A DNA stretch of 64,000 bases from Pelomyxa schiedti (taxonomy: Eukaryota > Protista > Evosea). The stretch covers positions 62,001 through 126,000 of the forward strand of contig JAHLWZ010000792.1 in NCBI GenBank assembly GCA_020536535.1. The letters run 5' to 3'. The notes beneath the pieces were generated by a model that was not told where the DNA came from, did no database searches, and was given only the letters and a program-made list of their open reading frames with translations. Shown here in pieces: positions 1-6,666 of this stretch. The position numbers and the translations under genes were made by a program. Each line of letters opens with the position of its first letter. Position 1 is the first letter of the stretch.

Positions 1-611
1 CTCACGGTGGCGGTATGCTGTTTGTAGTGATTGGTGGAATGGTACTTGTGGGATACGCGCTTCTTGCTCTAGAATGTTTGTTTTTTTGTTTGTTTGGGGT
101 GAACGAAACGAGTGATGTGCTTTTCGAAAAATAGATGGGGCAAATTTCGTGTCACAGTGCCTTTTAGCTGCCGGTCATCCTGACTTGGTTTGTTTTTGAT
201 TTTTGTAGTATGGAATGGACTAACTAATGTTTCTTGGATAAGGTTATATCTCCTTGTCGAGGATATCCTTGCGGCAGAGAGGAAATTGGAGGTATCACCC
301 TCAGCACCTGCCTATAGTGTGTATTCCCCTCCTTTCAACTATCTCATTCGTTTATGGACTGGCTAACCCACACCCAATGTTCCATGAATGTAGCCAAAAC
401 TATGGTTGGAAATCAACTTGCGGTGCACATGCAGCATTGCCGTCGAGTATTGTGCCTGGTGATGTGCTGGTTTTTCACGGAAGTGCGTTTGCACTATTGT
501 TTTCCTTCTCCAATTCGTGGACTCATGTTTCAGCAGGTTCCTGCACAGATTCGGATGTATTCACTTGTTGTTAATTACTCAAATAACATACCCAGACTCA
601 CGCCACACTGA
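1..611 (+). CDS. 3' part of an unidentified multi-exon gene (runs off window start)
   Basis: Short GT-AG introns near 75-135, 173-242 and 292-318 join open frames (...RLYLLVEDILAAERKLE|CVFPSFQLSHSFMDW...TPH*). No recognisable domain. Confidence 0.3.
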
Positions 612-850
612 TTGTTGCAATTTACAATTCAACAGCTTACATCGCCAGTCACTCCAATCAGCACTGGAGTATGTTCTGTACTTCCACACTTTTTGCTTAT
701 GATGAACAGACTACCCACACACCAATTATGCCACACAGTACGGCTACTATGAATGGCTTCATCTCCCCTCATAACTCAAAACAATCGAAATGTTTTTTTT
801 GTTTTGAAAGGAACAAATGCTACCAAAAACAAGAATGAATTCCCGCTTGT

Positions 851-3637
851 CTATAACAAAATACATAGACGTCTCTTTGGACGTTGTCCAGTGCTTATCC
901 CCTCCCCACCCCCAATGCTGGCTGTGAGTGCCTCAGGTTCCCTCAAATACTCACGTATCTCGCGAACGAGAAGATGGAATGTTTCCTCCACATTGATCTT
1001 TGTCTTAGCAGAGGCAAGAACGAAAGATACCTCGAGCATCCTGGCTAACTCGTTTGCTTCCGCGGGTGTCACCCGCCATTCTTGGGGGAGGTCGGCTTTG
1101 TTTCCGACAATGATCACTGGTACTCTGCTGGAATCTTTCACCTCCAGAATGTGCCTGAAAAGACTGCCAGTATCTGCAAAACTTGCCCGTGATGTCATAG
1201 AGAACATTAAGATAAAGCCTTGCCCAGTGCGCATGTACTGATCCCTAATGTCTTTTAAGTACTGCCATGAACATAGTAATAATGGAGTACCTCAAGGTAC
1301 TCAGTTCTTCCTGTCCTAAACAAGTGTTACTTTTTTTTTTTGGTAGTTTAATAATGGGAATAACCAGCAGTATCCTGTAGATATTATGTAAGTTATCTCA
1401 TCAACGGGGGAATTCATTCATACAAGGATGTTTAGCAAGCAGTCAACATCATCAACAGACACTTGCTTACGATAGCACTAAGTATATTAAAGAAGATTAG
1501 AACTCGACCGATGGGGAAAAGAGGCATGCATCTTCAATCGTTGGGTCGTATACTTCGATAAAGCGATCTTTTACAAACGAAATTGTAAAAGCTGATCTGG
1601 AGGCAGTCAATACTATTTTTGAATTGATAAGAGAAAAGCCAGTACTTGCCAACACCCCCAAGGCCAACTACACAAACTTTATAGTCATTATTATCCCGTT
1701 CTCCAGGTTGTCGTGGAGGGTATTTTCTGGGTTTTGGAACAGCTGGTTGCTTGCATGGGTTAGAGTTTTAGGGAGGAAACTGAGTCAACTACATACCGTA
1801 CTGGTAGATTGGTTTTGAGGTACTGTAGTAATTGCGGGACTTGCTGAACTTGCGGGAGTTGCGGGAGTTGTTGCTGGGGTAGACGAAGGAGAGGGCGAAA
1901 GGAGACAACTAGAGGATGTATGGTGTAAAGGAGGAGGCCTGGATGGAGGGGGAGGTGGGGGAGGTGTAAATGCGTTTATAGGTGATGGTTTAGCTTGGGA
2001 TTTCAGTGGAGTTAGGGCTAATTTATTCAAATCATGATCTGAATTTTGACGTTGCTGTTGAAGGGAGCCAGTAGGGGTTTCTGATGACACTGGTATACAT
2101 TCAGATGCTACTGCTCCCAGAACTGATGTGACCACAGGGTCCACTTTAGGTTTTGGTGTAGAAGATGTGGTTTGAGGTGCAGTAACTGACAGATTAGGGT
2201 TTGGCGGAATATTTGTTTCGGGAGGAGTATGGATTGTAGCAACATTCATTGAAACGGGAATCAAATCTACAAAGTTGGTAGGAAAGAACCCAGTGCAGCC
2301 ACGACAAACTCCCTCCAGCCATTCATTGCTATGGGCGTTGATAATTTGAAGCCTTTCTCCCGCCTTAAACGTTAACACATCATCCAGTCCTAAAGTATAC
2401 AAGAAAAGAGTGTTTAAATTACACTGCTACAGAGGGGATACTTCGCACCATTATCATTATCAAAGTCGTATAACGCACAACCCAGTAGCCGGAATTCTAG
2501 ACAGCAAGGGTCGTCATTTGATTCAACCGCAGCAAGTTTATGAGACATGAGTGTGATGAACGGTGCATGCTTTATCATCTCTTCAGTGATTAGCAGCACC
2601 AGAGACTGCAGGTGTTGTGGAGTTGGATTCGTCTCACTCATAGACATTGTGGGCCTCACAAAAAATCTTGAAAAAATGGTAGCTAGCCGGGCAGCGGAAA
2701 TCCTTGTAGAATGCAAATACAGAAGAAGAGCCGAGAGTAGCCTGCGAGACACAGGAGGTAATTTGTTTACCAAAACTCGAACTTGGCGAAGCCGAGTGGC
2801 TTGCTTGGATATGGAGCCAAGTTTAGCTATCGTCCAGTAGTGCTTTGGGGGGATTATTGGGTGAGGAAGCATCTTTAGGTATAAGAGTAGCAATGACGCC
2901 AACGTACAGTGTTGTAAAGCACTCTTGCATTCGCAATCAACTGAAAGTGAAACAGTGTCGTCAGAGTTGGGCGTTGCGCGCGGAATAGCGTCATCAAGCA
3001 CATTTTGAGTCAATTGTAAGCCAAGCTCGATTGCTTTTTTTAACTTCTGGACTCCTTCGTCTTCTTCTGGAACAGAAAAGAGGTCATCCTTTGCCACGGG
3101 CGCCCACACGACGAGCAATTGTAGCATTCTCTCAACCGGCTCAGGTAAAGAAGCCTTACTGCTTGAACCCACACAACGTGTCAACGGCTGACCAAAAGTA
3201 AACACCGAAGAAGCCACGCCGCTGCCGCCACTTCGACACACAGGAGGCTGTTGAACTGACGCTACCGGCGGAGGCTGTGAGCACGATCGCGAGTGAGATG
3301 CGAATCCCTGGGAGTCAAGATCACGAAGGGTGGGAGTGGGCGCCGTAGGTGCGAGAGAAGGAGGCAGTTGAAGTACGGCATCTTCGAGGGTCTGCAGATC
3401 CGCTGAACCACAGCGGTAATCCAAAGCGAGAGGGGCAGATCCCGAGTGCTGTCGCGGCTTTTGTTGGTCCAGTAGCCACGGAGATCCGGACCTCTGTAGA
3501 TCCAGCGAAGGCAGCGGCGCCGGCGACGGAGGTACGACAACGGGCGAACCGAAATTAATTGCCAATATGTCATCTGGCAAAGGAGGCGGAGGAGGCAGGG
3601 GAGTGACGTCAACCGGAGTGCCGAGAACCACGTCCAT
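851..3637 (-). CDS. RhoGAP-like + SH3 + Pro-rich + Ras GTPase (CAAX) fusion protein
   Basis: RhoGAP fold (LLYLKMLPHPIIP, NKLPPVSRRLL). SH3 (ALYDF|..LTFKAGE..EWLEG..GFFPTNFV). Phase-0 intron 1750-1796 leads in frame to QPAVPKPRKYPPRQPGERDNNDYKVCVVGLGGVGKS, then YDPTIEDCY, DTAGQEE, NKAD, SAK and C-terminal CILL*. Confidence 0.82.
1478..1529 (-). other. GC-AG intron in Ras switch I coding region
   Basis: GAA GAT|gcatgc...ttag|TGC TAT CGT AAG CAA restores the PTIED-CYRKQ motif. The only GT alternative inserts 7 aa into switch I. Confidence 0.7.
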
Positions 3638-3884
3638 TGTTTCGTCGTTTCGTCGAACTGCCTTTTTGTGAAACTCAGCGTTTGGATTACCACGAGGGTG
3701 ACTTGAACAACTCGGCTACAACTTCTTCTCCCGTCGTTACCATGAGCGAGTTTCGAGAAATTACTGGATTCCAACTCGTTGGGCGGTCACTCCCAACTTC
3801 GTGCCCGCAGTTGTATCGGTTTTTTTCGCCCTTTATTTTCTCTTCATTTCTGCTTTTTTTTTTCCCCCCTCGTTTGGTGCATGC

Positions 3885-6666
3885 ATGGGAGACCCGTATG
3901 GTGTGGCTTCGATGCACAACATCAACAACAACAGGGCAATGGTGCCAATGGGCGAGGGCGGCTACGGCCAACTTGGTGGCACTGGGCTGCCACAACAACA
4001 ACACCAACGCAACGATGACGACGTGAAACGCGACGTCCAGGAACTTGTGAAGGAGTTTCCCGATATGGGTCAATCTCTAATTATGGACATGAGACGGGAA
4101 CAACCCTCGATGCCTGTACTAAAATGTACTACTGTTTTATAGTTATTCCATACAACAGCTAGGGATTGGAACTCTAACATCATCTTCTTCTCAAATTGGT
4201 TTTTTTTTTTTCTCCCCTGTATAGCCGAACTGTTGGCAATGCGTAGACCTCAAAATCCAATTTCATCCCATGACCCTAAAGTGGATTCATTTGCCCCACA
4301 ACACCTACTCAATGCAGGTACTTTTTCAACCTTGTGAATAATGCATCCTAAGTAAAACAAAGTTTCACCCAGAGACATTCCACCAACTCCCTACATACAA
4401 CAGGCCCCGCGCTCCAACTCTCCAAGAGCACTATCTCCCCCTGTTGCTTCTCCTCCAGCACACACCCTCGCAGCAACTACCCTTCCACCACGTAGTGTAT
4501 CTCCAAGTAATGCAGTGGTTTCGTTTCCTCCAGCATTCCACCCCAGTCAAAGTTACCAATCCCCGCAAAACCTCCAGCTACCTACTTGTATAAATTATGT
4601 TCCATCTAGACCACATCCAAAACACCCGAAACCAACCCCAGTAACTACACCAAACATCATGCCTCAACCAAGGGTCATACCAACAAATTGTACTTCAACC
4701 TCACCCTTATTGAGCCCCCCAACGTCAATTCCCCCCGCACCCTCTCAAAACATGTCCGTCACACCCTATATTCAACCAGCCATAACATTTCCCCCCGTCA
4801 CTAACCCTACTCCACCCCGTAATTACCCCAGTGCAAGTAATGCCCCGGCTGTACAACCACATGTGGCACCAACAGTCACCAGCCCAACGGCATCTTTTCA
4901 TGAAACAAGACCACCTTCCAAGCCAGAGGTGTCTGGAATAGCATCCCTCCCAAATTTGAGCTCTTTTCCAGAGTTTCACAAAGTCAGACCCGCTATCCTG
5001 TCACCTCCTCAACCTCGAGAAAACCAGCCCAACAATCATCAGCCTGCATCTGTGCAAGTGAATCAATATACACAGCGGTCTCCGACTCCACCCAAGTCCC
5101 CACAGCCCTTGAGGAATCCTTCTGAAAATACACCAAGTTTGCACTACCCAAGCCATACTCCAAATCCAATTGTACCAGGAGCGCCGAAACTCCTTCTTGG
5201 AGGTAGCTCACAATACCACATGTTCACAGAACCCATCAATGCACCTACACAACCACCGATATGCTCACCACGTCATGAGACCAATACAACGAATCAACTT
5301 CCATGTGAAACAGCACTTACCAAATCCACGTTTTCGCTAGGAAGCTGTTGCACTCACTTGCGTCTCCCCAGTGAGTTCAAGAGGACTACCACCCTCACAG
5401 TACAGCAGGCTACGCGTCTACGGTCTTTAATATCCTCAACTACCTTGGAAGTCTCTGTTGTTGTTATTGATAATGGGTCTTCCACAATCAAATTTGGTTA
5501 TGCCGGCCATGATCAACCTGCTGGGCAATTCTCAAGTTTAACTTCCCGTTCTGATAAGCTCAACAGTAACTTTCATAAATCGCTTAAATGACTTTTCTTA
5601 GCTCATTCAGGTTTGCCAATGCCAACACTTGACAGAGGCAGAATCAGTGACTGGGGTAGCATGAACAAGCTCTGGACATCTACCTTCTCCGCTTTGCATA
5701 CTGAACCAAGCAAAAACCTACTGTTATTGACTGATATGCCCCTCGGCAAGGAACGAGAGCAAATTGCAACTGAGTGGTTTGAAACACATAGCATTGCTGG
5801 CTTGTACATTGCGTCACAGGGAGTATTGTCATTATTATGTAGTGGACGTCCCACGGGTCTAGCTGTGGAAAGTGGCTATGGGGCCACATACTTCGTTCCA
5901 GTTTACGATGGTATGAGGTGATTTCTTTTTGCACAAAACGCAAACAATCTCTTCAAGGAATGATGCTCAGGCATGGTGTGAAAAGACTCGAAGTAGGTGG
6001 AAAAGACCTGACAGACTATTTCCAGAGGCTTCTTACCCAAAGAACACGCATAGACCGGACTTCGGAAAATTACTGTGCAATAAACAAGGCAAAAGAAGAG
6101 CTTTGTTCAGTGTCCCGGAGCAAAGAAGATATTGAGTTCTCAGAGGAAACTTTTTTACTGCCTGATGGAAAAGTTGTCCCTCTTGGACCTTCCAAACACA
6201 AGGTGACAGAGGCACTTTTTACACCGAGCCTACTGGAATCTTTCAATGTATTTGGGCTCCATCAACATATTCAATTCTCTATCAGGGACTGTGACCCAGA
6301 GCTTGGTATCAACCCGCCATTAACAATCTCCCAACACGTAAAAAAGAAGCGGACCTATACCAGAATATTGTACTTGGTGGTGGGAATTGTATGTTCCGGA
6401 ACCTGGATACGAGACTAACATCAGAGTTGTCTAAACTGACGCCAGCTCCCAAAGTTTCACCAAGAGTTACTTTTGACCAGTCCAAGTGCAAAATTTCTAC
6501 ATGGCTAGGTATTTCAGCACTAGGAAATAATCTTAAGCCATTCCCTTCCTAACTCACGATACTAGGGGCTTCAATACTTGGTTCCATGGGCGACTTCCTT
6601 GACAAGGTTATACTAAAACAAGACTATGACGAGAAAGGTGGAGCTGTGGCACACAAATTCTTCTGA
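3885..6666 (+). CDS. Divergent actin-related protein with long N-terminal CUE-like and Pro-rich extension
   Basis: Actin motifs VVIDNGSSTIKFGYAG, RISDWGSMNKLW, VESGYGATYFVPVYDG, GGKDLTDY, FLLPDG, NIVLGGGNCMF, STWLGASILGS, DYDEKG. N-terminal DVQELVKEFPDMGQSLIMDM joins through GT-AG introns. Confidence 0.85.

Follow-up and report, generated by a model that had tools for sequence, protein, structure and literature searches.

With few exceptions, a classical Ras is a single domain of some 190 residues that stands alone and is coupled to other pathways only via transient partners. The gene described here, from the anaerobic amoeba Pelomyxa schiedti, departs from that plan. It lies on the minus strand (3637..851) of a 64,000-nucleotide stretch of genomic DNA, referred to as the window (contig JAHLWZ010000792.1, positions 62,001 to 126,000), and encodes an 811-residue protein in which one chain combines a RhoGAP-like domain without catalytic function, an SH3 domain, about 170 residues of disordered linker and a complete Ras whose end bears a polybasic stretch and a CAAX box. 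The RhoGAP-like and SH3 domains together are referred to below as the cassette.

A small GTPase that shares its chain with other signalling domains is not without precedent. Among well-studied proteins, only p190RhoGAP (ARHGAP35/ARHGAP5) is known to pair a Ras-like GTP-binding domain with a RhoGAP domain in one chain, and it links Ras and Rho signalling; its GAP domain superposes on the model of the cassette with a VIA Z of 16.6. However, p190 has its GTPase at the N-terminus and an active GAP at the C-terminus, also has FF and pseudoGTPase domains, and lacks both an SH3 domain and a CAAX box, whereas in the 811-residue protein the order is reversed, no Pfam FF domain is present and the GAP appears to be dead. 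The large Rab GTPases (Rab44, Rab45 and CRACR2A) carry long N-terminal regulatory or adaptor domains ahead of a C-terminal prenylated small GTPase. These have the same layout as the Pelomyxa protein, but differ in that the GTPase is a Rab and the front end consists of EF-hands and a coiled coil.

The cassette has its own look-alikes. GRAF/ARHGAP26 and the srGAPs share its order, RhoGAP followed by SH3 (Atlas language-model scores 0.91 and 0.87), but they are active GAPs with an arginine finger, are preceded by BAR-PH or F-BAR domains and have no further domain after the SH3. In p85 alpha and beta, an SH3 domain adjoins a RhoGAP-fold BH domain without detectable GAP activity (PMC8305018). Among language-model look-alikes of the cassette p85 ranks first (Atlas score 0.92, to be taken as a lead only), and its BH structures superpose at Z of about 12; the order in p85 is nevertheless the reverse, SH3 then BH, and the chain continues with SH2 domains and partners a lipid kinase. 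p85 has neither a GTPase domain nor a lipid anchor, and its sequence kinship to the cassette is undetectable beyond the shared fold.

One spliced gene joins the three domains

Splice sites set from a three-frame translation of the minus strand give a single gene of eight exons, with a coding sequence of 2436 nt including the stop codon. The seven introns measure 59, 47, 49, 52, 49, 49 and 46 nt; six are GT-AG and intron 4 is GC-AG. The resulting protein is identical to a deposited one (KAH3758015.1, "Ras GTPase [Pelomyxa schiedti]", 811 residues; P0001 below), in which all eight exon translations are found in order (100% identity in the search of cluster representatives). The Pelomyxa genome averages 7.43 introns per gene, with 1.59% GC-AG introns (PMC8887013), figures that the intron count and the GC-AG intron 4 of this gene fit. 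The parts of the gene that matter here are as follows.

3637..2449, minus strand: exon 1, whose start ATG at 3637 is the first start codon downstream of an in-frame stop
2448..2390, minus strand: intron 1, 59 nt, phase 1, which splits the SH3 domain
2389..1797, minus strand: exon 2, the SH3/linker exon
1796..1750, minus strand: intron 2 (gtatgt...caag), 47 nt, phase 0, on whose joint the fusion depends
1749..1646, minus strand: exon 3, the Ras P-loop exon
1596..1530, minus strand: exon 4
1529..1478, minus strand: intron 4, GC-AG (gcatgc...ttag), 52 nt
1477..1424, minus strand: exon 5
1374..1365, minus strand: exon 6, a 10-nt microexon that codes for DTAG of switch II
1315..1291, minus strand: exon 7, 25 nt, next after the microexon
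1244..851, minus strand: exon 8, with the stop codon TAG at 853..851

Everything turns on intron 2. A sequence-only reading of this DNA had proposed that the SH3 exon splices across it in frame, in phase 0, into the Ras P-loop exon, and that the latter has no in-frame ATG before DYKVCVVG. Both proposals hold: the splice sites fall where they had been placed, and in the frame of the P-loop exon there is a stop inside intron 2 and no ATG from that stop to DYKVCVVG, the first in-frame methionine of the Ras part lying downstream of the P-loop. The Ras part is therefore not translatable alone from exon 3. Conversely, if intron 2 were retained, the frame of the first part would stop after three codons (..STSTVCS, stop).

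RNA across this junction, which the same reading had named as a check, is available. Four public runs match the locus, and their contigs were compared with window positions 500-4300; X1, X2 and X3 are single-cell RNA-sequencing contigs from one sample in one study, and X4 is DNA, near-identical to the window and probably the assembly from which it derives. Intron 2 (1750..1796) is skipped exactly in X1 and X2, with CT..AC on the plus strand, that is GT..AG on the gene strand, and the shorter flank of the joint measures 104 nt. One X1 contig of 1365 nt (record 2) spans from the RhoGAP exon into the last Ras exon, in the blocks 2606..2448, 2388..1797, 1749..1646, 1596..1530, 1477..1423, the microexon and, further on, 1243..891; the 10-nt microexon appears in it as 8 letters between two joints. 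Intron 1 is spliced out in an X1 contig, the GC-AG intron 4 is skipped in all three RNA runs, and exon 7 and the microexon are both used. All seven predicted introns are thus removed in RNA contigs, and only the spliced form occurs among the Pelomyxa contigs compared. The 5' two thirds of exon 1 are covered by short pieces of RNA only (2563-2759 and 3306-3465). A single spliced RNA thus contains the RhoGAP, SH3/linker and Ras exons.

Two small differences between the sources were seen along the way. Position 1973, which is C in the window and in the DNA contig, is T in the X1 and X2 RNA contigs; on the gene strand this changes Ala536 to Thr in the disordered linker, and allelic variation, a difference between strains or an error might account for it. 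At position 1331 the X4 DNA contig is one base shorter in a run of A within intron 6, a homopolymer difference with no coding effect.

A RhoGAP fold with its catalytic residues lost, and an intact Ras

The protein divides into six parts, listed from the N-terminus.

3191..3637, minus strand: N-terminal region of about 150 residues, rich in Pro, Ser and Leu and poorly conserved, with the RNA piece 3306-3465 inside it
2543..3190, minus strand: RhoGAP-like (pseudo-GAP) domain, residues ~150-365, placed by Pfam, the PDB match, the structural model and column counts
2259..2482, minus strand: SH3 domain, residues ~386-440, placed by Pfam SH3_1 and structure superposition
1696..2258, minus strand: linker, residues ~441-612, rich in Pro, Ser and Thr, predicted disordered, which holds intron 2
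947..1689, minus strand: Ras G domain, residues ~615-780, exons 3 to 8, placed by Pfam Ras and its motifs
851..946, minus strand: hypervariable tail with the basic KRR stretch, the CAAX box CILL (865..854) and the stop codon TAG (853..851)

All three folded domains are recognised by Pfam: RhoGAP (PF00620) at P0001 243-320 with 43.7 bits against a cut-off of 24.5, SH3_1 at 388-434 with 33.5 bits against 22.9, and Ras (PF00071) at 618-778 with 163.5 bits over the full profile (1-161). An NCBIfam scan of the exons added nothing further, and tblastn across the window found no second copy of the gene.

The fold of the GAP-like half is fully kept. An AlphaFold2 (AF2) model of residues 150-445, with 30 relatives as input, has a predicted local distance difference test score (pLDDT) of 89.9 and a predicted template modelling score (pTM) of 0.88, and its GAP-like half superposes on the GAP domain of ARHGAP20 with Z 16.9 and a root-mean-square deviation (rmsd) of 2.6 Å over 181 residues; across ARHGAP20, ARHGAP15, p190, chimaerin and p50RhoGAP, Z ranges from 16.9 to 15.0 and rmsd from 2.5 to 2.8 Å over about 180 residues. 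By sequence, the best PDB match of this part is GRAF (1f7c, E 1.9e-5), which is also the first Foldseek match.

The catalytic residues are another matter. Arg282 and Lys319 (p50RhoGAP numbering), the arginine finger and the basic residue paired with it, are the functional hallmark of the RhoGAP domain, while Arg323, Asn391, Val394 and Pro398 are determinants that bind and stabilise the complex (PMC8305018). The GAP-like parts of 39 matches were aligned, nine of which are canonical RhoGAPs with the motifs G[LI]FR[VI][SP]G and M..NLA..F.P.L.R. The positions, in p50RhoGAP numbering, compare as follows.

Arg282 (finger): Ser188, 3076..3074, minus strand; Arg in 1 of 28 cassette relatives versus 9 of 9 canonical
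Lys319: Leu251, 2887..2885, minus strand; Lys in 1 of 28 cassette relatives versus 9 of 9 canonical
Asn391 (in the M..NLA motif): Arg317, 2689..2687, minus strand; Asn in 0 of 26 cassette relatives versus 8 of 9 canonical
Val394: Thr; variable in cassette relatives, Met, Ile, Val or Thr in canonical members
Pro398: Arg; Pro in 5 cassette relatives and in 8 of 9 canonical

The sequence-only reading had pointed to DDLFSVPEE as a finger loop that has lost its arginine, and the alignment agrees: these are residues 184-192, Ser188 stands in the column of the Arg of G[LI]FR[VI][SP]G in all nine canonical RhoGAPs, and the loop contains no Arg. A HMMER alignment to GRAF gives the same replacement of Asn by Arg. 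At the equivalent of Arg323, no more than about two thirds of cassette members have Lys or Arg. With neither an arginine finger nor equivalents of Lys319 and Asn391, the domain is predicted, on well-founded grounds, to be unable to act as a conventional GAP, and the term "GAP-dead" would be apt. The column counts show the loss of the catalytic Arg, Lys and Asn to be old in the cassette family. Since the equivalents of Lys319, Asn391, Val394 and Pro398 are lost, canonical Rho binding cannot be assumed either.

A single cassette relative, P0043 (654 residues, from Logan), has an Arg at the finger position (ALFRFD), which might be ancestral or might reflect a reversion.

The SH3 domain has the features expected of a member of its family, namely the Pfam score, a beta-barrel and the ligand-site residues. 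Its half of the model superposes on the SH3 domain of beta-PIX with Z 11.7 and an rmsd of 1.4 Å over 60 residues (the SH3 domain of DNMBP also matched, at Z about 11.6), it contains ALYDF, and W420 and P433 do not vary among Ras-type relatives. The linker that follows (441-612) is 22% Pro, 15% Ser and 12% Thr, and is predicted to be disordered, with pLDDT below 50 over model residues 296-464 in an AF2 model of residues 150-811 made from 9 alignment rows.

The Ras part, claimed from the outset to be intact at G12, G13, Q61, NKxD and CAAX (CILL), is so on every count. The motifs GLGGVGKS, YDPTIED, DTAGQEE, NKAD and SAK are kept, as are the equivalents of Gly12, Gly13 and Gln61, and the chain ends in ..KRRLCILL followed by the stop codon; G1 to G5, switch I and a CAAX box with an upstream basic stretch place the domain in the Ras subfamily. 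The last Ras exon alone finds R-Ras2 and N-Ras as its best PDB matches (E 4.5e-27).

A lineage-restricted cassette with three outputs

The RhoGAP-like part (2450-3190, minus strand) was searched exhaustively against all cluster representatives, and 48 of 1.84 billion match at E ≤ 0.001. Word-index searches with exon 1, with P0001 150-445 and with a profile of eight relatives gave nothing, only the query, or the query together with three unrelated proteins that match in Ras or SH3 alone; as known family members were missed too, these searches carry no information on absence. In the long matches, Pfam scans place the cassette, RhoGAP-like then SH3, at the front of three kinds of protein that differ in the domains behind it.

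Ras output: P0001, P0005, P0011, P0013, P0014, P0026, P0042, P0068
DH-PH RhoGEF output: P0021, P0023, P0027, P0030, P0033
WW plus Tyr/Ser-Thr kinase output: P0019, P0028 (KAH3732570.1, Pelomyxa), P0031 (plus ankyrin repeats)

Members come from Pelomyxa schiedti, from the transcriptome of Mastigella eilhardi and otherwise from ENA, Logan and JGI contigs. Pelomyxa schiedti itself has three Ras types, the kinase KAH3732570.1 and two short models annotated as hypothetical; the Ras-type paralogues of the 811-residue protein are KAH3744949.1 (743 residues) and KAH3744992.1 (659 residues). A Ras-type transcript of Mastigella eilhardi encodes 636 residues (EP01105_P015124), and P0014, P0026, P0042 and P0068 are environmental Ras-type proteins. 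The search for RhoGAP, SH3 and Ras in one chain that the sequence-only reading had called for thus returns Pelomyxa paralogues, Mastigella eilhardi and environmental eukaryotes. The Ras-type relatives share 30-47% identity with the 811-residue protein in the cassette and differ from it in the lengths of the N-terminal extension and the linker, and in all eight Ras-type members G1 to G5, Gln61 and the basic stretch are kept and the CAAX box has L or I as its last residue.

In another eukaryote, a 621-residue RhoGAP-SH3-Ras protein is encoded in one uninterrupted open reading frame (ORF) on a 59.6-kb contig, beside a CLU-family gene. In a further organism, a transcript-like contig of 1979 nt codes for 647 residues with all three domains, and aligns in blocks to a genomic locus with short introns, the Ras exons being 100% identical. 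The fusion, as read from these predicted proteins, is independently confirmed in other organisms. In a tree of the cassette, one clade (95/94) unites the RhoGEF types and another (86/92) holds most Ras types together with fragments, while P0011 is unresolved, a topology that is compatible with a single origin of each fusion without proving it. Taken together, the matches show the RhoGAP-like and SH3 pair to be a conserved, lineage-restricted cassette ahead of Ras, DH-PH RhoGEF and WW plus kinase domains.

Two Trinity isoforms of Mastigella eilhardi, P0049 (401 residues) and P0052 (416 residues), are the same as the 636-residue form over residues 1-386 and end in the linker. They could represent a Ras-less isoform or unspliced RNA, and a Ras-less isoform made through intron retention is conceivable.

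To our knowledge, no protein with the RhoGAP-like plus SH3 cassette has been characterised. Full-text literature searches found no paper that describes a RhoGAP-like-SH3-Ras protein; the Pelomyxa genome paper contains no mention of RhoGAP or SH3 and no occurrence of Ras or GTPase (PMC8887013), and the Mastigamoeba genome paper mentions small GTPases in passing only (PMC8136499). The initial statement that the architecture is not known from any characterised protein therefore stands within the scope of these searches, but the protein had already been deposited, under the name "Ras GTPase", and it has relatives.

Possible roles of the cassette, and the neighbouring genes

The explanation that we consider best overall, and probable, is that of a single fused gene with a shared cassette, in which the cassette serves as a non-catalytic adaptor or address module for a membrane-anchored Ras output. 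The Ras part would cycle normally between GDP and GTP and be held on the membrane by a C-terminal lipid, most likely geranylgeranyl because the CAAX box ends in Leu. The cassette would contribute no catalysis: its SH3 domain would bind proline-rich partners, its GAP-like helical domain a protein partner, small GTPase or otherwise, and these contacts would bring the same partners or the same site to whichever output domain follows. In effect, the 811-residue protein would amount to a Ras switch with a scaffold of its own, attached through a long tether. What weighs against this explanation is that the adaptor role is deduced from architecture alone, that the RNA consists of contigs rather than reads and comes from a single sample, and that what is conserved in the cassette (FG, DLF, LPHP..PP, KLP and F..R) consists mostly of motifs of the fold core, so that no specific ligand is indicated.

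A Ras that is permanently tethered to a dead-GAP/SH3 adaptor amounts to a natural experiment in coupling small-GTPase pathways by domain fusion, and the cassette adds a further pseudo-GAP family whose non-catalytic function could be worked out. We know of no genetics in Pelomyxa, and the organism limits the value of the system in this respect.

Among the other explanations, the one that survives best is that the pseudo-GAP binds GTP-loaded Rho or Rac without stimulating hydrolysis, in the manner of OCRL1, and so provides a hard-wired Ras-Rho coincidence link. A Rho-binding pseudo-GAP that hard-wires Ras to Rho was what the sequence-only reading had proposed, right as to the architecture and the dead GAP but unproven as to Rho binding. 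The RhoGAP fold is intact, the top structural matches are GAP domains that were crystallised with RhoA or Cdc42, RhoGAP-like domains without an arginine finger such as that of OCRL1 have been reported to bind Rac1-GTP (PMC8305018), and the presence of the same cassette ahead of DH-PH RhoGEFs would make sense as Rho-family feedback. Yet the cassette family has lost, together with the finger, the equivalents of Lys319, Asn391, Val394 and Pro398, a basic residue at the Arg323 equivalent is kept in only part of the family, and the p85 BH domains, which are without most such determinants, show no GAP activity (PMC8305018). The case for canonical Rho binding by the cassette appears weakened by these residue losses, and we hold this explanation to be tentative and rather doubtful.

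A bolder version of the shared module, in which the cassette would be a lineage-specific sensor of a small GTPase or a membrane-proximal partner, such that one cue addresses Ras, Rho and kinase in parallel, seems unlikely. If it were true, it would imply a hard-wired cross-talk network in archamoebae and their relatives, and no classical Ras before its Ras version would have had an input module of its own.

Regulation in cis, with the GAP-like domain docked on its own Ras, or the SH3 domain on its own linker, and the Ras closed until a partner opens it, must be judged quite improbable. Tethering makes weak intramolecular contacts plausible, and the linker holds a class II (PPPPSR, residue 542) and a class I-like (KYPPRQP, residue 603) SH3 motif; however, such ligand motifs occur in the linkers of only two of the six Ras-type relatives that could be scanned, and the model of residues 150-811 has a pTM of 0.39 with no confident packing between domains, an outcome that, given its 9 alignment rows, is weak and says little either way. 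Use of the same cassette with RhoGEF and kinase outputs also speaks against a Ras-specific partner in cis. Binding of the SH3 domain to its own linker as a general mechanism was dropped, as the motifs are not conserved across relatives.

That neighbouring RhoGAP-SH3 and Ras genes were joined by annotation or assembly, through read-through or chimeric transcript assembly, is scarcely credible and largely refuted: retention of intron 2 would indeed end the first part after three codons, the Mastigella isoforms do end within the linker and lack Ras, and the RNA contigs are those of one sample, but two runs both lose the 47 nt precisely and in frame as a GT..AG intron, with a shorter flank of 104 nt, the Ras exon lacks its own start codon, another organism has the three domains in an uninterrupted ORF, and the same architecture recurs in at least seven representative clusters.

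Returning to the window, the fused gene has a convergent neighbour on the plus strand at ~537..790, which is transcribed and has very short GT..AG introns at 557..595 (39 nt) and 669..709 (41 nt); a 106-residue ORF that overlaps it (254..574, plus strand) has no match in Pfam. On the other side, a long ORF on the plus strand (4515..5591) encodes about 300 proline-rich residues followed by the start of an actin fold (VVIDNGSSTIKFGYAG). It scores 26.5 bits with Pfam Actin, just below the cut-off, and probably represents exon 1 of an actin-related protein whose N-terminal extension is unusual.

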